A stretch of 64,000 nt of DNA from Lepidodermella squamata (GCA_047495785.1 JBLDXI010000009.1:1612001-1676000); one strand, 5' to 3'. Numbered from the stretch's first letter, positions 1,656-60,900 are shown. Numbers and translations are program-made. Notes: generated by a model from the letters alone, not told the origin.

Positions 1656-3391
1656 TCAGACGTCGACGTTCAGTCCAAGTAAGAACGAGTCAGTTACAAC
1701 AGCGAATCGGTTTCCGTGAGCCTTCGCGCCCGGATGACGCGTCGTGGCGTAAACGCCGCCAGGTAAATCACGGATCAAGGCCGAAACATTCAGGGACGAA
1801 CGATCGATACAGGCAGCTAAATTGTCGCTTGAGCCTGCAACCAATATGTACTGCTGGCCGAGCCAAGAAACGCAATAAGCCTGAAATTTAAAACAGTCCG
1901 ATTTTAGTATTTCGTTAGAAAAATTATACTTCCTTGTCCCCTTAATAGTTTTAGTGTTCTCTTGGGTTTTTCTTTAAGAATTTTAGAAGCACGCTTAGGA
2001 ATGTCGTTTTTACATCGGGAAGTGTAAAATAATCCTAAATGATCAATTCGAACAAGAAAAAGCTATTCCATATTCAGATTCGTATTTCGAATATTTGCTA
2101 ATTATCGAATATTGAATATTCCTACATGCGCACTATCTGGAACCACTTTTGAGCTGCTAAAGAGGCATATCAGTGTGAAAATAGCAAAATAAATTGAAAT
2201 AAAAATTCCTCCTTAAATTTTTTACCATACCGCATTATAAATCACTTAATTTTCAGTAAATTGAATTACCTGTGTCTTAGCTTTCACAGGCATTACGACT
2301 GTTTTGATGAGTTTTAGGCTGGAATAGTCCCAGATTTGAACGACTTCCTCAGAACGCCAGCTGCCAGTTATCAGATGATTATGATCCGGATCAAGATCCA
2401 ACGCATCTCCGCAGATATGCGGACCAAACAGCGAGCGAATGGCTTTCGACTCACGAGTGTCCCAGAATTGAACGGTATTATCCCAACCGCCCGTGTAGAA
2501 CACGTGAGGATCGATCGGGTGAAACTGGCACGCGAAAACCTTGGATCGATGACCGTCCATCACATTCAGTTCAACACTAGGTGCGAAAGTTGCCACCTTC
2601 TGCTTGGTAACCATATCGTAGAGATTGATCTCAGGCGTTCCGCCAACCGTGAGCAGCCTGCTGCCAGATATGAACGGATCGACGGCGATGTTCAACGTTT
2701 CGCGACCTTCAGCCAGCGTTGCCAAGGCGCGACCGCTCGAAGTGTGCCAGATTTTGACATGGCCTGACGTGTAGCCGGCTACGACGATGTTCGGCGCGGC
2801 TGGGCTCGATAGATATCGCACGCAGGTCGCACCCTGCGCCGGCAGGTTCGCCGTTTCATCCGCCAACGTATACAGATGATTGACATCAGGGCTTAAGACG
2901 TCATAAATTCGAATCGAGCCGTTCGTCAGACCAACCGCAATGTGGCTACCGTCGTGGTTGTACTGGCAACACAGGGCAATTGAGCCGCAGTTACTGTTAA
3001 AATAAGGCGTTAATTTTTTGAGATTAGTCGAAATCTGGCTGGGTTTAATCATGATAAATTACTTTGTGAAATTAAGCGAGATTGAACCGAAAGAGTCGTA
3101 GCCAGCAAATCCCTTGGCACTTGCGGCTTTTGCCTGTTGAGCGGAAATATCCATGCGAGACGGCCGCCGACCGGCGCTGAGCAGGGAATTGACTGAATTG
3201 TTAGATTTTCGAACTGATGCCGGTGAAAGCGTGTGCCCGGTGCCTTCAAAATGCTTATGCGACAGCGCTGTGACCAACTCATCGGCCTCGCCTTCTGACG
3301 GCGAGCTTGGAGGTGACAGGTGCTCTTCTTTGTCCTCAGCTGCATTGTAAAAATCAAACTGCCCTGCTTGAGCTGGTTTCTGATGGTCCAT
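1656..3391 (-). CDS. WD40-repeat protein (3 exons)
   Basis: ORFs 3391..~3062 (MDHQKP...), ~2993..2270 (GH...WD repeats such as GHRSKVFACQFHP...TGGWDNTVQFWD) and 1880..1656 join through GT-AG introns. Confidence 0.85.
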
Positions 3392-17006: not shown

Positions 17007-18235
17007 TTACTTAAGCTTTCGATTAATAACTGATACTCCGAACTCGTTGTACTCTTGACGAGTTATCCAGTTGGCTTGGAACGACGAAAGTGAGCTCAAA
17101 ATTGAGCCACCTATCCATGATGAATACTTGCGTTCAGGTCGAACTTCTAGAGTGATTTTAGTTCCAGGCGGCAGCGACCACTTCAATTCGCATTTTAAAC
17201 GTTCAGCAAAGCCAGGCGCAACAGTTGCACCACCACTTATAACGATATTGCTAAGCAACTCTTTTCTAATGTCCATTTCACAGGCTGAAACGGATCGAAG
17301 TAACAATCCGTGAATTCCTTCCAATTCACTGCCCGCTAAAGATGGTTTGAATAACACCTCATGACATTTAAATCGTTCGCTGCCCATGGTCAGTTTTTGC
17401 TGGTCGGGAAGTTCGTACTCAGTGACGAGAGAAGTAGCTTGTCCGCGTTCAATGGCTTCAGACGTTTGCGCCGCGTCTATCGTTACAAATCCAACATTCT
17501 CCTTGATATCTTTTGCGAGCTCGTAATCGTAAAGTTTCTTAGACTTTGTTGTCGCTGTATTCAAGAGTTTTTCTAGTTGCCGCGTTACATCTCGACCGCC
17601 AAAATTCATTCTCTGAGTAGCTTCGACGATTTCAAAGCCCTCATAAATCGCCATTGTATGCGTAACACCGTCTCCAACATGTAAAACCAACCCAGTTGTT
17701 CGACTTGAAGCCATCAGAGCCAACCAAGCTGGGTTTTCAATGTGCAGAGCTGGTACGTTGAATCGCTCGAACAGTGTCTCCACCATTCGGTGACGATTTT
17801 TTGCGGGGTTCAAAGGCGCCTCTAAAATCATCATTATTGAGATATTTTCAAATTGATATACAAAATTTCACCTGTTGTCAATACGTTATGCTCTTCGGGC
17901 GCTATTTTTAGGGCGTTTTTGAAGGTGTAGCGCCAGATTTGTTCCATAGCATCCCAATTTTGTACTACACCCCGCTCAATCGGGTATTGAAGCGATAGAA
18001 TTCCGCGCATTCGCTGCGCATCATCGCCGATGAATGTCTCTTGCATTGCAGCTCGCCGTTGCGCCCAGGCGAGAGATGAAGACGAAGTCTTAACCAGTTC
18101 ACACCTCGCCAACCACGCTGGGTATTGAGGTCGGCCGATGACATTGGACAGCAGGGTTGTAGGAATGTCATCTGCGCCAAAACCGGCTTTTATGCTACTT
18201 GTTCCATTCACCAAAACGCAGCTCACTTCTTTCAT
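17007..18235 (-). CDS. Divergent actin-like / actin-related protein (copy 1)
   Basis: IKAGF, YPIERGVVQNWDAME.IW, EAPLNP, GDGVTH, YELPD, ISGG, PERKYSSWIGGSIL; one intron at ~17824-17871. Confidence 0.92.
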
Positions 18236-18520
18236 TTCAGATTATTTGAATCTTATATCTACGCAAACTAAAAAAGCACTTGAAATATAGCGCGGTTTTA
18301 TTTCGGCGAAAAATTCTAGGCAGTTATATCATAGATAAAACAATCCACTCCCTCAAGCGTGCTAAGGGATATCTTTTAGAGAAACGCGGAGGCGTCTCAT
18401 ACGCAGAGATAAAACGCTTTTCTTAGTAACAATGTATCCTAAATACACTTGAAACGATCTAAAATGAAGGTTAAATCGAGGTAGCAATTAGCCATTTAGT
18501 CATACGATATATAGGTCAAA

Positions 18521-19642
18521 TCAAAGAGTAAATTTCCTGAAAATTATTGCTGCACCGTACTCGTCGTAGTTTGATCTTGACAACCACTCGCAATTTGGCG
18601 ATTGCGCCACTTTTGATCCGCCTAACCATGCCAAGAACTGCCGCTCCTTCCTCGCACTTACTTTCACCTTGATATCACGATGCGTCTGACGTTGAAGCTC
18701 GGCAGTCAGGCGGCTGGCGAAACCGTCAAAACAAGTTGTTCCTCCAGCTAGGACTACATTGCCGAAAAGCTTTCTAATCTTGTCTTCATTACCCCCACTC
18801 GCTCTTACAATCGACTCGATTACGGTGAATTGCAGCCCAATATCTTCACGGCCTGCCATTGACGGCTGAAACAGAGCTTCTGGACATTTGAAACGCTCGT
18901 CACCTAGAATTATTTCGCTAGAATCGGGCAGGACATATTTAGCGGAGTAAGTCGTCAGCTTCAAACTAGTTCTTAGATCCTCCGGGTAGTCAGCTGATAC
19001 AAAACACATCTTCTCTTTGATTTCTCGAGCTATTTCGCGTTTGGCAGATGACTCGGCAAGGTTAACTCCGGTCCCTCGAGATATCAGTTTCGATAAGCGA
19101 GATGTCAAATCACGACCTGCGTAGTTCTTAGCTGTTGTTGAATCAATAGAAAATTTCCCGTCAATAACCGGCATGACGTATGTTACACTTTCCCCACTAT
19201 CGACAATGACTCCTGTTTGGCGATTCGTAGCTTTCAGTGCGAGAAGTCCTGTGTTTTCTAGATGAAGCGCTGGAACGCCGAATGATTCGAACATCACCTC
19301 GCAAATATTAGCTTGGCGCTTTTTCGGAGACAACGGATTCACGGTAACTACTACACGATGTTTGTCAGGCCGTGCTTTTAATAGGTTAAATCCATAGCGC
19401 CATATCTTTTCGCGGCCATCTAAGTCGTTCCAATCCGGATGTCGTAGATTTAGAATTCCCCGCAGCTTCTGAGCCTCATTGCCGACGTAGAAATCTCTTG
19501 GAACCGCAGTAACTAACCGTGATCTGATTCGAACTTCGTCAGGATAACCGATTTGAGCGGGGAAAACTATTTTTGGAGCATCATCGCCAACATATCCAGC
19601 TTTTATGTAGCCGCTACCGTCGTCTAAAACCACCCCAGACAT
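18521..19642 (-). CDS. Divergent actin-like / actin-related protein (copy 2, intronless)
   Basis: VVLDDGSGYIKAG, DSGESVT, AGRDLT, REIKEK, YVLPD, ERFKCPEALFQP, LAGGTT, WLGGS. Confidence 0.92.
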   Translation of the reverse strand: MSGVVLDDGSGYIKAGYVGDDAPKIVFPAQIGYPDEVRIRSRLVTAVPRDFYVGNEAQKLRGILNLRHPDWNDLDGREKIWRYGFNLLKARPDKHRVVVTVNPLSPKKRQANICEVMFESFGVPALHLENTGLLALKATNRQTGVIVDSGESVTYVMPVIDGKFSIDSTTAKNYAGRDLTSRLSKLISRGTGVNLAESSAKREIAREIKEKMCFVSADYPEDLRTSLKLTTYSAKYVLPDSSEIILGDERFKCPEALFQPSMAGREDIGLQFTVIESIVRASGGNEDKIRKLFGNVVLAGGTTCFDGFASRLTAELQRQTHRDIKVKVSARKERQFLAWLGGSKVAQSPNCEWLSRSNYDEYGAAIIFRKFTL

Positions 19643-19848
19643 GATTATTTGTGATAAAATAACGAGACACAAACCGGTAGCAGGGCGCGGAAAAACTTTA
19701 CGGGCCTTGCAATGTCGCGAGCTTTTTGCGGCAATAAACGGCCATTATCTTATCGAATTCACTTTACGCGGAAAAACAAGCGGCTATCGTGAAAGCAAAT
19801 AAACGTAAACAACTGTTTTATTCAAGATAAACCGCCAAATAATATAAT

Positions 19849-21018
19849 CTAGTTTCTACCCGGGTTAAGCATAATTTTCTTGTGAATCGCAGCGGCGCCA
19901 TGTTCGTTATAAAAGCGTTTCGTGATGGTAAGTTCGTTGAAAAAGGGTAAATCGGCTAGAACGGAAGCACCTGTCCAGGCCGCATGTCTGCTAAATGGGC
20001 TTTCGGATACATGGAACCGCAATCCGTTTGACGCTGTTAGAAGCTCAGTTTCCAGCCGTTTCAGAAAACCAGGAAATAGCCATCCTGCTCCAGACATAAC
20101 AATATTTTCGCTCAAATCTCGTCGAATGTCGATTGGGCACTTCCCTAGAGACTTCAAAATCAGCTGTTGCACGCTTTTTGCTTTCGACCCAAATTTCGCA
20201 GGCTGAAATGCCAGTTCTGGGCAACGAAACCGTTCCGTGATTAGTTTTAGCTTCAAATTTTCGCCGCGTGCCTTGTACTTGGCCCTGATCTCCCCTTCAT
20301 TTCTAGAGGCCGTCTCCATTTCGTTGACAAAATTTGCAGCAACGTAACAAAGCCTTTCTTTGATGTCTCGTAAAATTTCACTATCGATCGCGCTTCCGAT
20401 GATGTTTCCGAGGTGGTCGGTTAATGCTGAACCGGCAATATCGCTCGAGTGTACGGTAGCATTGGCTATCAGGTAACCCTCGAACATTGGGACTATGTTC
20501 ACATCACTGTGACCAAATTCCACCATTAAGGCTGTGGATTTATTCCCTGCGAAAAATGAAAGCGGCGCTGGAGTCGCGACGAAAATGTCGAGAAATCCAC
20601 TTTTCTCAAACATCAACTCAGTCAATTTTTCGAGCTGAGATCTCGGGCTATTCGGAGAAGCTGTGAAAAAAAATCAGGAAAAATAACTACGCTGTATATC
20701 AATAATGAACAAACTCGTAATGATTAAAGAATGTTGAACAGGATCTGCCTTGAGTTTTCTGAACATTACGTCTTGCCAAATTGATTCCATTGCGTCCCAA
20801 TCTTCGATTACGCCTTGTTTTATGGGTGACTCGACGCTCAACATGCCCTGGCGCGATTCCAATTCTTGACCGATGAAAGGTCCTTTCAGGCCTAGGTCAG
20901 GCGCCATTGGCTTGCCCGCTAGTGTTCTGTAACAGATTTGCGGTGCATTCTGCGTAGAAAATCCTGCCTTGATTTGGCTGGAGCCATTGTCAATAATAAT
21001 CGCTGAGCTATGTGACAT
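19849..21018 (-). CDS. Divergent actin-like / actin-related protein (copy 3)
   Basis: IIIDNGSSQIKAGF, PIKQGVIEDWDAMESIW, AGSALT, RDIKE, ERFRCPE..FQP, WTGAS; one intron at ~20661-20716. Confidence 0.9.
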
Positions 21019-26514: not shown

Positions 26515-26870
26515 TCAGTTTTTTAAGCACTTTTCTAAAAGATTACGATGCTTGATTAAATAAGGCTGCCAGACGCATGAGGCATATAGTAGGTTGGGTA
26601 AGACATAAGAATTGAAAGCACGAATTAGAACTGAGTGATTTCTGGTGGAAAAAGAGTTCAGGATCAAACCACAAAGGCGACGGCTTTTAGCGTATAGTTG
26701 GTTGCAGTGAGACGAGAAGGTCAACCTGCTATCTATGATGACGCCAAGATCGCTAGTTTCTGTCACCGAGTTGATAATGTGAGAACCGAGTAGATAATTA
26801 TGGAGTAAGTTCTTAGATCCAAGACGAAGAATGAAACATTTTTTAAGATTAACTGATAGTATTTTAAGAT
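26515..26870 (-). mobile_element. CR1/L2-clade LINE reverse transcriptase C-terminal fragment
   Basis: LSVNLKKC...DLGVIIDSRLTFSSHC...A.R.CGLI...F...L.RAFNSYVLPNLLYASCVWQP is the typical RT-end/thumb region of CR1/L2/Jockey-type elements; truncated at both ends. Confidence 0.85.
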
Positions 26871-27123
26871 ATATGACCGCATCCACGATTACGAGTGTAT
26901 CTACATCAGAAGTTAAACATCGAAGTCACATCACACATCGCATCAGCCATCAGCCAAAGACCGCAAGCGCCAAAAGTTATCGCTCCAAAGGGTAGCTTTG
27001 AAAGCCTGGGCCACAAAATTCGCAAATTTAAATGTCCCGGGTTTAAATGTTGACATTTTTATAACATTTTTTATTAAAATATAACAATATAAACAAAACG
27101 GTGATATTCGAATATTTCAATTT

Positions 27124-53121: not shown

Positions 53122-53318
53122 AACGAAGTCTTCGGCTATGCTATCCTCTCATAACTTCAATAATATCTATCGTGTTGCTTACCTACTATAGGTCAAATTT
53201 GTTTAAGCTGTATCATAGTCCCAAAAGCCTATCTAGTGTGTGATCGAAACTTTGATTGAATTAAATTCATTTTATACATGTCAATTTAACAATTATTTTC
53301 ATCGTTAGGTTGCGTTAA

Positions 53319-53925
53319 ATGGCAAAAGTTTTACACATTGGCCGGGCTCCAGTCCGGTTCACCAAGTTCTACTTGGAATCTAGTAATCTATTTCTTCGCG
53401 ATAACGTTCGTATCTTTGCCTTCAACGTCTTGCCCAAACAACCGCATTCTGCTGGCCTGGAGGCGTTTGATTTTTGGCATACATGTCAGCTTCAGTATCG
53501 CAATCCTAATGTTCAGCTAGTCAGACTGGATAAAGTTACGCCAACTCCTTTCATCATGACGTATTTCGAAGATGGCTCTCGCGAACTCGTCGATTGCTTC
53601 GGCAAAACTCGAACCGAAATTCGGGAACATATTCGAAAAGTGTTTGGAAAATCTGAGTGAGTTGAGTTTTATCATTATTGGAGTGGTTAACTTTCTGTAT
53701 TATTGAAGCGCCGAAATCGCGGAATTGATGAAGAGCAAAGAAGAACAGGAGAAACAACGCAGTCATCCTCCTCAAAACCCGGCTAATTTTGGGCTCGGGT
53801 GCGATCGGTGGTGCATTTGCGAAATTCCGGGCCAGGTTCCCTGCTCAGGCTTCGAACGCCCTCCCAAAGAACGGACGGGCAAATTCCGCTTCCACGGCGT
53901 TGATCGTGATGCTGTTTCTAATTAA
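53319..53925 (+). CDS. MRPS25: Mitochondrial ribosomal protein S25 (mS25)
   Basis: GRAPVR.T..YL, F.FW...QLQYRNPNVQ, TPTPFI, NPANFG..C.R.CICEIPGQVPC; intron at ~53657-53709. Confidence 0.92.
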
Positions 53926-54085
53926 CCCCAATATTGTTTAAGATATCAAGCTGGTCCATCTTTGCATCAAATCATAAATCATTTTTCTTATTTTCTCTTC
54001 TGATAGAATTTAATCACGAATAATCAGTTAATTTGGCGGTTATATGGCCGTAAAATCAGGTTGGTTATTTCTTCGAAATTTGGTC

Positions 54086-54223
54086 CATGTGATCTCGAAA
54101 CCACTATTGATTGAAAATGATATAGCTGGTGGTGTGTCACAAATAATAACTAATGATGCGATTTCGCACGGATCCAAAACTTGAGTTGTAGTTCTTTCGA
54201 CATCTTCATAATCGCGAATAATT
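54086..54223 (+). ncRNA. H/ACA-type snoRNA (intron 1)
   Basis: Hairpin tgtgat..acca/tggt..gtcaca, H box AAATAA, hairpin gcgatt..gat/atc..aatcgc, AUA box. Pockets ctcgaa/ggtgt and gcacg/ttca. Confidence 0.65.
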
Positions 54224-54319
54224 TGTTCGTTTAGATTGCGACGTCTCGCGCAGAATAGCCGAATCCATAAAATGTAAGTTCGAAGCAAAGGATTTTACGA
54301 TTTATACTTGTTGCTGGAG

Positions 54320-54425
54320 AGTTTTCAGTGATGACCTTGTATAAGTAGTGGTCAGACTTGTCTGGTGACAACTTTTACGATGAGAACTGACAACCTCTTA
54401 GCAAATGTTGACTTTCTGAGATTCA
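54320..54425 (+). ncRNA. SNORD75: Box C/D snoRNA, SNORD75 (U75)-like (intron 2)
   Basis: Box C GTGATGA 54328, D' CAGA preceded by AAGTAGTGGT (antisense to conserved LSU GAAAUACCACUACU), C'-like CGATGA, box D CTGA 54416, short terminal stem. Confidence 0.75.
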
Positions 54426-54539
54426 ATGTATTTATGGAGTGTATGTTTGTTTCAGATTCGAACAATTCGATGCATTGCCAATATTTGGTCTGACGTGCTG
54501 ACTTGAGGTTAGTTACCCCTTTTGATTTCATTCAAGTTT

Positions 54540-54677
54540 GGTTTGAGCACGAGGTCATTGCGTATGCCGTAAATATGTATGCGTGCTGGCTTCAAGCTCA
54601 AACAGCGACGAGCAAAACTTGACAACCGATTAATCTATTCTTATTTTTACTTGGTTCATCTAAGTTTGCTGATATTT
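54540..54677 (+). ncRNA. H/ACA-type snoRNA (intron 3)
   Basis: tttgagc/gctcaaa and agcaaa/tttgct lower stems, AUA box; 3' pocket strand CATCTAAG is complementary to conserved 18S CUUAGAUG. Confidence 0.7.
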
Positions 54678-54758
54678 CAGATGCCTTAAGCGACTTCGAC
54701 GTTTTCCTTTGTTCGACTGGCGATACAAGGTGAGTAGCTTTGTTTGTTTGATCTTCCA

Positions 54759-54897
54759 TATCGAGACGAGTGACAATGTCAAGCCGGTTACATACAGTCT
54801 TGAATTGATTTGTAGTTTCGAATATTTTGGCCTAGTTATGCCGAGTGTGGCTGTTTGCTCCCTATCTTACTGCCTCTCTTAAATATGGCCCATATTT
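54759..54897 (+). ncRNA. H/ACA-type snoRNA, family A copy 1 (intron 4)
   Basis: tcgagac-GAGTGA-caat...attg-atttgta-gtttcga; ggcc..TGCCGAGTGT-ggc...gcc..ggcc-AUA; paralogous to the RNAs in introns 5 and 6. Confidence 0.75.
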
Positions 54898-54990
54898 TTC
54901 AGATACCCGTCTTTTTGAGCGATCGATCACAATCGCGGCGGCTTCATGCTTGGTGAGATTTTTAATGCCTTAATTTTTGAAAATTTATAA

Positions 54991-55126
54991 GATCGAAGCG
55001 AGTGACAATATCAAGTCTGAGCGTGGCTTGAATTGATATGTAGTTTCGAATATTTTTGACCATTTAATGCCGAGTGTGGCTGTTTGCCTTTGCTCTTCCA
55101 GCCTTTCAATAATATGGCCAAAATTC
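54991..55126 (+). ncRNA. H/ACA-type snoRNA, family A copy 2 (intron 5)
   Basis: Same two-hairpin architecture and pocket sequences as copy 1; tail box AAA. Confidence 0.72.
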
Positions 55127-55186
55127 ATGTAATTTCAGATCCCACCATGGTACGTTGCTTATGTAACAATGGTCTCATGGAGTTAC

Positions 55187-55325
55187 CTCGAGTTGAGTGA
55201 CAACGTTTGAATCTCTTCGTGGTTCAATGTTGCGAAAGATACTCGTAAAGTAACTGCCGTATATTGCCGAGTGTGGCCTGTCGCCTTTTCCATCGATCAG
55301 CCTTTCTAAATCGCGGTGTACATTT
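55187..55325 (+). ncRNA. H/ACA snoRNA, family A copy 3 (intron 6)
   Basis: cgagt-TGAGTGA-caac...gttg..actcg, H box AAAGTA, TGCCGAGTGTGGC, ACA at 55320; compensatory stem changes relative to copies 1 and 2. Confidence 0.8.
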
Positions 55326-55393
55326 TCAGATTCGAATTCTGGAACTTCAAGCTATTGACCGAGGTGAGTGAATTTTTGAAATTAAATCTTTCT

Positions 55394-55530
55394 TCTTCGA
55401 AATTTATGCTTTTTGTGTTGCTGATTCTTGTGCAACACTAAATTCAAATTTCGAGAAATTCTTAACCTGAGTTGAGTACTTGAGTCGTAATTCAAGATAT
55501 GACTGAAGAAATTTATCCAGGCTAACATTT
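55394..55530 (+). ncRNA. H/ACA snoRNA (intron 7), predicted guide for the LSU rRNA 5' end
   Basis: tcgaaattt/aaatttcga stem with pocket ATGCT/TAAATTC complementary to LSU GAAUUUAAGCAU; second hairpin cctg/cagg with pocket TGAGTA/ATATG; ACA at 55525. Confidence 0.78.
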
Positions 55531-55630
55531 TGTTATTATTTCAGGAATGAAGAATTTGCGATGGCGAAGCGCGGCGATCGTGGGTGTTTCGATGCAAGGT
55601 AAGAGTCGCTCTTCGATTTTCGCCCAGTTA

Positions 55631-55767
55631 CTCGAGCAATAGAGTCAGTGCTGTGTCTTATCAGTGTCACAATGCTGCTAATTGTATCGAATATAAAATG
55701 ACAAAAACGAGTGCGGTGTGCCCGTTTAACTTGTGGGCGCCTCGTTTCAGTAATTTTGTCTACATCT
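55631..55767 (+). ncRNA. SNORA3: H/ACA snoRNA, SNORA3/snR11-like family B copy 1 (intron 8)
   Basis: 5' pocket TAGAGTC/GCTA pairs with LSU GAGC-UU-GACUCUA (yeast 25S U2416 equivalent); H box ATATAA; ACA at 55762. Confidence 0.82.
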
Positions 55768-55852
55768 TTCGGTTTGTTTTTCAGTTGCTGTCACCTTTCG
55801 ACCCACGGGTTATTCACTCAGGTGAGTAATTTTTCGTTGTAAATTATCGCCT

Positions 55853-55991
55853 ACCGAGACATAGAGTCAGCGTTGTGTCTATTGTAGTGGCACAATGCTG
55901 CTTAATGTTTCGAAAATTGATCGAAGCATGTCGTTCAGTGCGGCTGTCACGTATATCATGTGATATTCGTTATTTAACCTTGCTTTCATTT
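55853..55991 (+). ncRNA. SNORA3: SNORA3-like family B copy 2 (intron 9), boxes degenerate
   Basis: TAGAGTC/GCTT pocket and TTCAGTGCGGC/TCGTT pocket retained; ACA replaced by TCA and no clean H box. Confidence 0.68.
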
Positions 55992-56188
55992 TGATATTTT
56001 AATTTCAGACGTACCAGATAGTCACTAAGCGACCAGCCATATGACCGTGACCTACCACGCTAACAAGGTAATGAAAAACTCCTCCTTAAAAAGTCATTCT
56101 TAATTAACGGTGTTCTTCTTATCAGATTTTCAAGTATCGTTGCTGGCCTAGAAACAAGTGAGTAATAATTTTAAAATTTAGTTGATAA

Positions 56189-56336
56189 ATCGATGCATTA
56201 GAGTCAGTGTGGTGTCAAGCTTCGGCTCTAGTGACACCTTGCTGCTAAATGTATCGTAGACTAATTTGAGGCATTTCGTTCAGTGCGGCAGTTGCTTGTT
56301 CCGTGTGACAATCGTTATTTCACTTTGCTTACATTC
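56189..56336 (+). ncRNA. SNORA3: H/ACA snoRNA, SNORA3-like family B copy 3 (intron 11)
   Basis: TAGAGTC/GCTA pocket, H box AGACTA, TTCAGTGCGGC/TCGTT pocket, ACA at 56331. Confidence 0.82.
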
Positions 56337-56405
56337 TGATTTGTTTTTCTTTAGGCTGGTTTCACGCGACACAAATGGTAATTCTATTTTCTATTTTGGG
56401 TGGCT

Positions 56406-56543
56406 CTCGGACCATAGAGTCAGGGGCGTATCTGGTTTCCGTGATGCGTTTCTGCTTACGTGCTCCGTATAGCAACGGCCTGATATTTCAGGGTTGTCAC
56501 TATTACTCAAGTGTGGCAGCTTTTATCGACCAGCCCTACATTT
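56406..56543 (+). ncRNA. SNORA3: H/ACA snoRNA, SNORA3-like family B copy 4 (intron 12) with a different 3' hairpin
   Basis: TAGAGTC/GCTT pocket, H box ATAGCA, 3' pocket TATTTCA/TATCGAC, ACA at 56538. Confidence 0.78.
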
Positions 56544-56933
56544 TCCCTCTTTTTTCAGGTACTTCTGCAAACTTCTCGACTAACTCATTAATGATTCGAT
56601 TTTGATATGATTAAAATGCTGAAATAAAATTGTTTGAATACCAATGCGGACTCTTTTGAAACTTCATTTTCTGTGACGCCGTTTTGAAGCCAAGTGGAGG
56701 CTGTATCCTAGTAACAGACCAACTTAAGCGAAAAACTCCCGCGATATCGGCGGCCTATATCATCTGAACACTGAACTCCCCAAACTTTTACACTGCGAAG
56801 CCGGTTTTTCACAGGAAACTTCGTAAAATTCTGGAATTCTAAGCGATTCTGGCAGCTAAAACGTGGTAATTAAGAATATGCTGTGAATGCTGAGAAACGA
56901 AATTGAATTAAAAGCAGAAAAAACGGAAAAGCC

Positions 56934-57027
56934 TTCACCACATTCTTCGAGGTTGTGATTTGAATTGTATATCAAGAACAGGCTGTAAACCTGCTTTGTT
57001 TACAAAACACGACCACGTGAATGGGCG
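56934..57027. repeat. Dispersed ~95-nt hairpin repeat, copy 1
   Basis: ttcaccacattc.ttcgaggttgtgat.tgaatt..atatcaa..acagg...cctg...aacacgaccacgtgaatgggcg, shared with 59638-59736. Confidence 0.8.
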
Positions 57028-57966
57028 GAGGGAATCGATTCCGTAAGTCAACATCGGTAGCTGAAATTGAAAGATTTAAACAAAGTGAGAAAACAACAGT
57101 CACCCGCCGTGAATTTCGGTACTTTTAATCCATAGATCTCACTTCTTTCTGATAGATTTTCATCATCAAACTTATATAGCAAAGATAAAGAATATAAAGA
57201 AAAATGAGGCATCTTTCGTTGGCATGACATGACATGATCTCGCAAATCAGCAGTTTCATCATAGAATAGTTGATACACATGAGCGCGGGTGTAGAGCATC
57301 AATAAGAAAAAATCATAAATCGAACACGATTCAAGAACAGAAAAAATCAACTGAAAGAAGTCAAGAAGTTGTGCAATGATCTATCTCGATCTGAACGGCA
57401 TTGTTCGACTACTCTCTACAATCAAATTTAAGTGCTTTGTAATAGGAGATAGCCACACGAGTGGCCTCTGGATGAAATGTTTGAAGAAGACGAAGAAAAA
57501 AACGAATCTACTCGAGAGTGGGTGCAAGTTGAGGCGAATAAAAAACGAGACGCCGGCCAGCACATCAAAACGACGTCGCCGCGTTGTAAATTCAACTCTC
57601 ACTTGCTCGCTCACTACTACGTTATTAGCAGTTGTTAGGTGCATTAGAATTTTTTCTACAACGCTCACGTAGCCGCATGTGTATGTACGTATTTAAATGC
57701 GAGCTATTCGTCTTGCTGCTGTTGCTGCTTCTGCTTATTATTACTATGTGCGTGTACCGAGACTAGCATTAGCACTGTATTATGCGTATAAAAAAACTGA
57801 AAAATAGAGCCGATCGATCGCACATAACAATAATGTAGCGCGCAGGAAAAATACTAGAGAGAGAGAGAGAGAGACCTTTCCGCTGAAAATAGCCGGCCGT
57901 GGCTGACAGCGAATTACAATGATCGCGAGCAGTTGTGACAGCAGATGATAAAAACGAACGCGGGAT

Positions 57967-60900
57967 TCAAATTATTAACGCAGCAGCAGCAGTCAACATG
58001 ACTAGATAATAAGGCAAAATCATCACAATAGCACCCTTCGAGTCCATCGGCATTGCTAGCCGGGTTTCTTCCAACGTCGTGTTTAGCACCAAACAGCCGG
58101 TCCACAGTTTCGTTGTTTCGAGAGGCCGACTCCGAGCGGCCTCGAGCCGGTAGTCGTCGAACGGGATGAAGCGACGGCGCGATCTTTCCGCCGCGGTTTC
58201 GACGACGAAATACGTCACGCCGTCCGTGTTTAGAAACGCCGAGTTGAGAGGCAGTGGCACGCCGCGCCAGAATCGTTCAACCGGCCGCGGGTACGTGAAA
58301 TCGACATGGTTTCGCAGCTCGTCCAGCCGCCAATACCGCTCGCCAGCGACTAGGTAGGTGTACAAATTGCCAGACCAGACGAAGGCGGCGTCGATTCGCT
58401 GGACGTCGGCAGGCAGGCCGAGTTCGATTATCGGCCGGCCGGTCGGCGGGAAGCCGGGTATTAACGCGTTTGTTCTGAACCGCCAGTAGCGACTGTCGGA
58501 GAAAATCATCACGTCGTTGTCGTGCCGCCGTTCGTAAAACGTGTCGACGCGCTCGAGTTGGCTGGGCAGGCCGAGGAAGAAGTCGGAGGCCAAGATCGGG
58601 AAGCCGGGTGACAACGAGCCGTCAGCCTCGAATCGCCATAAATTGTTGCGCCGAAATGCGAAGATTTTACCGCGGATGATCGAGATTGCGTCGAATTCGG
58701 TGTCGCAAACGTCTGGGACTCGCTCGTCGTAGCCCGGCGTGGCCATGTCGGGGGTTGACGGCAGCTCCCAGTCGGGCTTCGAGCCGATTGCGGTGGTCGG
58801 ATTTCGGGCACTGGCGGTTTCTTCTGTCCAGGTTCCGGAACCGTAGAGAAACGCGAGGGCGTGCAGATCGTCGTCGCCAAGCCGCGGATCTGAAGCGTAG
58901 TTGTTGTACCACGGGTTCATGACCGAATCGGGCACGGCTGAGTGACCGAGTCCGAGCGCGTGGCCTTGAAAAACAAGATGAAAATGAATTAAAATGGCAA
59001 ACAAGCTAAACCTAATTCGATTAACTGATTTCCCCCACCAACCGTCCCGCAGAATTTTTACAAAATTTCGGACAGAATTTTTGAAATTCTAGAGCAATTA
59101 TTCTTATCCCAGTGTAAATAGAGATTTATCACCGGAAATGTCCAAGTGTCCAAAATAAATCACGCATTTCGGACACTTTTGAGATATGTCAAAATCACTC
59201 ACCAATCTCGTGCAGAGCAACAGCGAACAGATCGACGCCGGTCGCTTTGCGAAGGTCGGCTGTGTCGCGGTCGAACCATTCTTCGTCGTCGTCGAAATGA
59301 ACCTCGCCGCCGCGCTGTTCGCCAGGGAAAAACGCGTGTGCCAGAACAGCGCCGTTGCCATCGAAGCGGTACGCATCGCCGTGGTGTTTGCGAGCGAATA
59401 AGAACGTGATGTCGGCCGACAGCGACGGCACGGTTTCTTCAATCACCTCCAACTTGGCCGCTTTCGCCCATTGCTCCAACGCTCGTTCGACCAACTTCTT
59501 CGAAGCCGATTTGCCAAGTGAATTCGAGTAATTCAAAAACCTGAAGCAGACAGATAAAAAATAATTATTAAAAACTCCAGCTTAATAAATAATGCACTCA
59601 GATTTTAAGGGATTTATGCTGCTATGGCAGACCGGCTTTCACCACATTCATTCGAGGTTGTGATGTGAATTTCATATCAAAGACAGGTAGAGAAACACCT
59701 GTCTTATTTGACACAACACGACCACGTGAATGGGCGAGCGCCAGAGTCGCACTTGGCCGATAACGAAAATTGCAAGAAAAAAATGCGAGAAAAAAATCAA
59801 CTCACTGATAAGTTAGTCGTTTCCGCTTCCATCGAATGTTGGCCGAGACTGCGTAACGCTTTATTCGTGATTGAGCAGTTGCCGGAGTAGTTGTTGTCGA
59901 TGAAACAGCGTTGAACTCGCGGTCAAAGTCACGAACGCCGCATCGTCGTTCGACTAGCTGTTGGCGCGTAGCAAAGTCGATTTTTCCAGTTGGCCGGAGG
60001 CCGCTGAACGCCTGGAATCGAGCGAGGGCAGCCGCGACCGGGCTAGGCGGCGCGACATCTTCGCCGGCTTGTTTTGACCCGCGTGGGTCGACGAGACGCT
60101 GTGGCGCGGCCGATAACGGTAAGTAGAACGAGCTAGGCGTAGTTTGTTCGACGTAGCCGAAGTCGAGGTAGCCATATTTTAGCAGATAATCCTAGAAAAT
60201 GCAGAAAGCAAAATGCGAGTTGGTTTTGTTATGGCACATCGTGATTGTTGTTATTGAAAAGAGAGAAAGAGATGAAGCCAAAACACGGAAATGGCATTTC
60301 GGGAATAAACAGCGCCGGCGCAGCACTAAAATCTGTCGTAGATTTATGATGTTTAGTGTTGCGAAAATGCAACATTATTACACCCCAAGCCGATTGCAAG
60401 CGAGCGCGCAACAATCAGGCCAGGTATTAGAGGAACTTCGCGATAAATAAAGATGAGAATGCCAGAAGATGATGATCATGATGACTGGTGGAGATGCGAA
60501 ACTACAACATAAACTGCAAACAAAACTGCAACTTGGTACAAGCGAAGAAGATGGGTGAGAGTAGTGGAGTAGTAGCAAAACGAGTAAATGAGCGCGAATT
60601 TCCGGCCTGTTCGCCGTTCGAACTAATCCTTCATCTAGGCCCCGCGGCTAGATAGCTGCTCGCGAGCAGTAAGCGAAATGCAATAAAGCCGAATGAAAGA
60701 AAATAATAATAATGAAAAGACGAAGATGATGCTCGCATAGATATAGATGTGTAGTGGCAGTAGTTGAACATGTATCGCAGGCGCTTAATGCAGGCCATCT
60801 GTCGGGAGCGGCGCGCTGTTCGGCGGCTGGTGCGCTGGTCAAGCCGAAGCCTAACCAAACACATACGCTAGTGAATGGCGCGCGCGAAAATTTATAGCCG

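Follow-up and report, generated by a model that had tools for sequence, protein, structure and literature searches.

A spliced non-coding transcript with predicted intronic snoRNAs in the gastrotrich Lepidodermella squamata

Non-coding genes that carry small nucleolar RNAs (snoRNAs) in their introns are known from Drosophila, where Uhg1 holds 16 snoRNAs in 4.2 kb (PMC4430873) and Uhg4 holds seven, Psi28S-2949 and Or-aca5 included, as a case of H/ACA cargo in a non-coding host (PMC9710044). The locus described here lies in a 64,000-nt stretch of the L. squamata genome (GCA_047495785.1 JBLDXI010000009.1:1612001-1676000; hereafter the window) and resembles Uhg1-Uhg8 in being a non-coding host of several exons with redundant snoRNA paralogs in its introns at a similar density, whereas its sequence and position are unrelated to theirs, its cargo is mostly H/ACA, and it is possibly promoterless. 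At about 240 nt per RNA, compared with about 260 nt in Uhg1, the packing is not exceptional, contrary to the first-pass annotation of this DNA, which had presented the array as ultra-compact. GAS5 and SNHG1 likewise use their exons as a scaffold with short ORFs, but they are C/D hosts with longer introns, whereas the 3' ends of the L. squamata RNAs lie 3-18 nt from the intron end. SNURF-SNRPN/SNHG14 is an imprinted read-through host that spans hundreds of kb and carries orphan C/D RNAs; the likeness to it, should read-through hold at the present locus, would be that of a snoRNA array in the 3' extension of a protein-coding gene. As flies and mammals offer well-known cases of this layout, the locus is presented as a new example and not as a new mechanism, and it leaves the accepted logic of such host genes unchanged. 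It does annotate 11 likely snoRNAs in gastrotrichs, the L. squamata literature examined having yielded no snoRNA annotation, and it shows the turnover of guide copy number within a fixed host in two species.

Structure, splicing and coding potential of the host

The host follows genes for mitochondrial EF-Tu and an mRpS25-like protein, which we so name by family resemblance (both +), and precedes a matrix metalloproteinase gene (MMP, -). EF-Tu and mRpS25 were searched exon by exon, and the host exons were joined solely for the ORF scan. Our parse agrees with the earlier one in yielding 12 GT..AG introns separated by internal exons of 11-59 nt (Table 1). Eleven introns measure 173-197 nt and the remaining one, which is empty, 58 nt; the introns adjoining the locus are of 50 and 52 nt, in keeping with the shorter local norm claimed before. 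An AATAAA lies close to position 56625.

All 12 junctions are supported by run X1, as the first-pass annotation had predicted: eight directly, by GT..AG joints at introns 1-4 and 7-10, and four indirectly, through the 11-nt exon 55139-55149 seen between introns 5 and 6 and through loose ends consistent with introns 11 and 12. X1 is a single run whose kind was guessed, and which was taken as RNA because of these spliced joints; being made up of contigs, it is blind to mature small RNAs. Its depth is 65-250 over the host exons and about 3-9 over the introns. Run X2 gave no host joints.

The first ORF of the spliced host ends in exon 3 after 30 codons, and the longest reaches 51 codons, in accordance with the earlier claim that the transcript has no real ORF. 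A hidden protein gene at the locus was rejected, since there is no such ORF and the exons are unconserved: those of the window and of the relative described below, represented by contig L003, are unalignable (best score 17, null mean 20). Some host introns in both species start with GTT (GTTGG or GTTAG), at 54060 and 54508 in the window and at 1835 and 2268 in L003. Elsewhere in the window, several divergent actin-like ORFs stand in tandem (17007-21018, -), and a short ORF at 26515-26886 (-) looks by eye like a reverse-transcriptase-associated LINE fragment.

Very probably, in our assessment, the locus is a non-coding host of the GAS5/SNHG/Uhg type, transcribed by Pol II and spliced, whose introns are trimmed to snoRNPs that modify rRNA while the scaffold decays. 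The data show the splicing, the absence of coding capacity and selection on the guides. By analogy with the known steps of snoRNA biogenesis (PMC8609340), Pol II would yield a short 13-exon RNA with exons serving only as scaffold, splicing would free each long intron, and debranching and exonuclease trimming would follow, leaving 10 H/ACA-type RNAs of about 135-145 nt and one C/D RNA of ~80 nt. The same analogy suggests that these mature RNAs would bind their proteins, the H/ACA ones guiding pseudouridylation and the C/D one 2'-O-methylation of rRNA, and that the spliced host RNA, which has an NMD-type layout, is probably cleared by NMD.

Folds, boxes and predicted targets of the intronic RNAs

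The long introns fold better than their shuffles, with a mean z of -1.9 compared with +0.5 in 18 control windows (Mann-Whitney p 1.2e-4). Values for single RNAs range from -5.2 to +0.8, those of introns 1 (+0.8) and 4 (-0.1) being no better than shuffles, and the hairpin-hinge-hairpin-tail fold, present overall, is weak in introns 1, 4 and 6. The RNA of intron 2 has C, D', C' and D boxes, a terminal stem and a guide that follows the +5 rule. The first-pass annotation had proposed 10 H/ACA RNAs and one C/D RNA; their boxes are less clean than it claimed, only 4 of the 10 H/ACA candidates (introns 6, 8, 11 and 12) having a canonical H box together with a canonical ACA, and the others carrying a relaxed H box, a variant at the ACA position, or both (Table 1). 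A scan against Rfam at both thresholds, a check that had been suggested, gave no match at the gathering threshold and nothing meaningful below it, and for this reason the RNAs are classed as functional equivalents and not as members of Rfam families. Each long intron contains one conserved predicted snoRNA, intron 1 being doubtful, which fits the earlier proposal of one guide RNA per long intron of a non-coding host.

Table 1. Features of the host locus (window positions unless a contig is named)
Feature	Position	Strand	Remarks
mRpS25-like gene, one intron	53319..53925	+	RNA contigs join its last exon to host exon 1 without a break
Pyrimidine tract and AG, no clear upstream donor	53983..54006	+	may be a trans-splice acceptor or a start of the TCT/TOP type
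Spliced non-coding snoRNA host, 13 exons	54007..56640	+	junctions and ORF scan; 5' end uncertain, may reach back into mRpS25
Host introns 1-4	54060-54234, 54274-54455, 54508-54680, 54730-54902	+	GT..AG
Host introns 5-8	54953-55138, 55150-55329, 55364-55544, 55599-55784	+	GT..AG
Host introns 9-12	55822-56008, 56068-56125, 56158-56354, 56378-56558	+	GT..AG
Intron 10, normal-sized (58 nt), empty	56068-56125	+	parse and RNA contigs
Intron 1 RNA, weak H/ACA candidate, no target	54088..54223	+	fold z +0.8; ends AUA
Intron 2 box C/D RNA	54317..54398	+	C 54328-54334, D' 54353-54356, D ~54387-54390
Intron 3 two-hairpin RNA	54541..54677	+	H box relaxed; AUA lies 6 nt before the intron ends; z -4.1
Intron 4 family A H/ACA-type RNA	54761..54897	+	relaxed H box, AUA; ortholog L003:3413-3552; z -0.1
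Intron 5 family A H/ACA-type RNA	54993..55125	+	relaxed H box, AAA
Intron 6 family A H/ACA RNA	55188..55325	+	canonical H box, ACA 7 nt from intron end
Intron 7 H/ACA RNA	55397..55530	+	relaxed H box; z -4.4
Intron 8 family B H/ACA RNA	55632..55767	+	both boxes canonical
Intron 9 family B RNA	55854..55991	+	relaxed H box, degenerate ACA (UCA); z -5.2
Intron 11 family B H/ACA RNA	56190..56336	+	canonical boxes; targets as intron 9
Intron 12 RNA	56407..56543	+	family B 5' hairpin, different 3' hairpin conserved in last L003 intron

Two groups of paralogs were recognized, family A in introns 4, 5 and 6 and family B in introns 8, 9, 11 and 12, in agreement with the tandem duplication of intron units proposed before, by which the array would grow and shrink as intron-exon units are gained and lost. 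In the 5' hairpins of family B the pockets are invariant and the stems covary, as had also been claimed; eight pairs show changes on both sides, a count that 1 of 500 shuffles reproduced and that relatedness inflates. At least 25 differences between strains were recorded, and none of those listed falls in a guide strand, an outcome expected about 10% of the time by chance. Almost every H/ACA 5' hairpin in both species (54761-56543 in the window) opens with (T)CGA or CGG and closes with TCG or CCG, which hints at one ancestral hairpin.

Gastrotrich rRNA and snRNA were not found in viral or metagenome scans or in paper supplements, so surrogate rDNA from other eukaryotes was used for target prediction, together with human modification maps (PMC6182160) and pocket boundaries set by eye. 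The surrogates were marine MAG contigs (L008, L011, L012, L014, L015, L022, L025 and L029); L010, L013, L016-L021, L024, L026, L027, L035 and L036 were left out as possibly human or other mammalian. All six family B 5' pockets (introns 8, 9, 11 and 12 and two in L003) fit a single LSU uridine, in GAGC-U-UGACUCUA, with a spacing of 13-15 nt to the H box (0/40 shuffles), and this uridine is the equivalent of human Psi3899. Its guides elsewhere are presumably human ACA3/SNORA3 and yeast snR11, from which the family B RNAs differ in that they have no Rfam-level similarity to them, carry partner 3' hairpins that aim elsewhere, and stand in four tandem copies. The 3' pockets of introns 9 and 11 and of L003 intron 12 fit GGAUUA-U-GACUGAAC in LSU, with one bulge allowed (0/40 shuffles), and the 5' pocket of intron 7 fits GCUGAAU-U-UAAGCAU, close to the 5' end of LSU (1/40 shuffles); both uridines are unmodified in human, and LSU pseudouridines absent in human are thus predicted.

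The 3' pocket of intron 7, which is conserved in L003 intron 10, matches the SSU Psi1244 site of five reference rRNAs (1/12 shuffles). We take human ACA5/ACA36 and yeast snR36 to be guides for the same site; compared with these, the intron 7 RNA has a different partner hairpin and no Rfam match. In the C/D RNA of intron 2, the +5 base of the D' guide falls on the equivalent of LSU Cm4032, and the same guide, presumably corresponding to SNORD75 of GAS5, occurs in two L003 introns. The 3' pocket of intron 8 may aim at the central U of CUACUGA-U-G, through 12 Watson-Crick pairs in one reference only. With the surrogate rRNAs, bipartite pocket pairing around a target U, for which a distance to the box of 14-16 nt is expected, was obtained for introns 7, 8, 9, 11 and 12, and no convincing pocket target was found for introns 1, 3, 4, 5 and 6. 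Because the shuffle counts are small and the pockets were set by eye, target assignments for single-copy RNAs are to be read as leads. Two further ideas, that all 3' pockets share one contiguous target and that family B aims at helix 69, were given up when better sites emerged.

A syntenic array in a relative

A relative of the mRpS25 gene, at 80% identity, was found on freshwater-type metagenome contigs with the order EF-Tu, mRpS25, gene-free gap and MMP; the JGI metagenomes gave no further syntenic relatives. By eye, the gap in L003, a locus known from its sequence alone, yields 13 GT..AG introns, 168-220 nt long, and exons of 17-57 nt, with no ORF above 25 codons. Its introns match those of the window by family and order, with a weak first RNA followed by the Cm4032 C/D guide, family A, the Psi1244 guide and family B. 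As the host occupies the same locus with the same order of cargo, it must be older than the split of the two species, and only the copy numbers are species-specific. The L003 cargo amounts to roughly six RNAs of the C/D and seven of the H/ACA type, compared with one and ten in the window, so that the earlier description of a lineage-specific, H/ACA-dominated host is not supported, its dominance by H/ACA RNAs being true of L. squamata alone. The comparison of the two arrays indicates that the cargo changes through tandem gain and loss. Five of the six L003 C/D RNAs (1835-3324) carry a SNORD26-like LSU guide, so named from a weak Rfam match, that is absent from the window array, and the sixth has a guide to another LSU site.

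Cargo, transcript origin and intron geometry

The conservation of guide strands across the two species, in contrast to exons and loops, bears on what the cargo is. An ordinary spliced lncRNA or a decayed repeat, whose hairpins would be by-products of duplication with most copies dead, could account for the empty Rfam result, the weak folds of introns 1 and 4 and the degenerate ACA of intron 9, but not for this pattern of conservation, nor for the compensatory changes and the pairing, at canonical spacing, with sites known to be modified; such an explanation is largely refuted, and we give it a very small chance. Less remote, though still improbable to our judgement, is that part of the cargo, namely family A and the 3' hairpin of intron 12, consists of scaRNA-type or orphan H/ACA RNAs and not of rRNA guides. 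These strands are invariant in both species and have no significant conserved site in the surrogate rRNAs, where the conserved 3' hairpin strands of intron 12 found no target, and non-canonical H and AUA boxes are retained in both species. Candidate targets of family A and of the intron 12 3' hairpin are the CUACUGA-U-G LSU site, a Psi4606-like site, 5.8S and U4, the last because the family A 3' hairpin strands resemble what we take to be the complement of the U4 3' stem-loop. Partial fits to CUACUGA-U-G, to the Psi4606-like U-G-CACUCGGC (L049/L052) and to 5.8S speak against orphan status, as does the recovery of family A 5' hairpins by the family B model, which suggests a common origin as rRNA guides; a scaRNA role would sit poorly with a UGAG (CAB-like) loop that occurs in intron 5 only.

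A separate question, whose answer would add to the snoRNA-host explanation and not replace it, is whether the host has its own promoter. The first-pass annotation had set its 5' end at 54007; this is not established, as RNA coverage is continuous from the mRpS25 stop codon. The host may instead arise by read-through from mRpS25, or be the last cistron of an EF-Tu-mRpS25-host operon trans-spliced at the AG at 54006, a close call that we place slightly on the doubtful side. An X1 contig runs from 53915, in the last mRpS25 codons, through host junctions 1 and 2 and shares 30 nt with the mRpS25 contig, but a contig that spans two genes need not be one molecule, and overlapping transcripts fit as well. 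From the mRpS25 stop codon it is 81 nt (55 nt in L003) to the unpaired pyrimidine-AG, without an intervening AATAAA; the tract proper occupies 53983-54001, and a similar AG is found at L003:1551. Moreover, the mRpS25 RNA itself begins with 11 non-local letters before its acceptor (53307-53308), ~30 nt past the end of the EF-Tu contig, a leader that likely reflects spliced-leader trans-splicing. No leader was present, however, among the loose ends listed at 54007, and the pyrimidine tract is also compatible with a TCT/TOP start, which is usual for snoRNA hosts. A literature search turned up no papers on trans-splicing in gastrotrichs or on snoRNA hosts carried in operons.

The H/ACA RNAs of the host are tightly packed, with the ANA box ending 6-21 nt before the intron end, whereas in human ribosomal protein and lncRNA hosts the median distance from snoRNA end to intron end is 109-247 nt (PMC13736004). 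A YTAA motif lies at -18 to -22, within the 3' hairpin, in all five RNAs whose box is no more than 12 nt from the intron end, and it overlaps the ACA box in intron 7 and in two L003 introns; over all introns, the test for the motif was weak (19/28 against a 50% background). In introns 3, 4 and 6 the box is 6-8 nt from the intron end, and a branch point would fall in the strand of the 3' pocket. This geometry would place a normal branch point inside several of the RNAs. Were it so, the 3' hairpin could not receive its H/ACA proteins until the intron had been spliced out and debranched. That the host is the promoterless last, non-coding cistron after EF-Tu and mRpS25 and, at once, has branch points embedded in its H/ACA RNAs is a conjunction we consider unlikely; if true, it would offer a compact case for studying the order of snoRNP assembly relative to splicing. 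Neither arrangement was found in the literature searched.

The neighbourhood of the host also contains microRNA sequences. The Lsq-Mir-67 precursor with its flanks, the only Lsq-Mir-67 entry found in the supplement of PMC6468455, matches an MMP intron of the window (59613-59765, -) at 153/154 nt. A second mir-67 hairpin, whose window copy has one base missing in the mature arm, lies directly 3' of the host (56932-57029, -; L003 4540-4625, -), and the relative likewise has the two copies.
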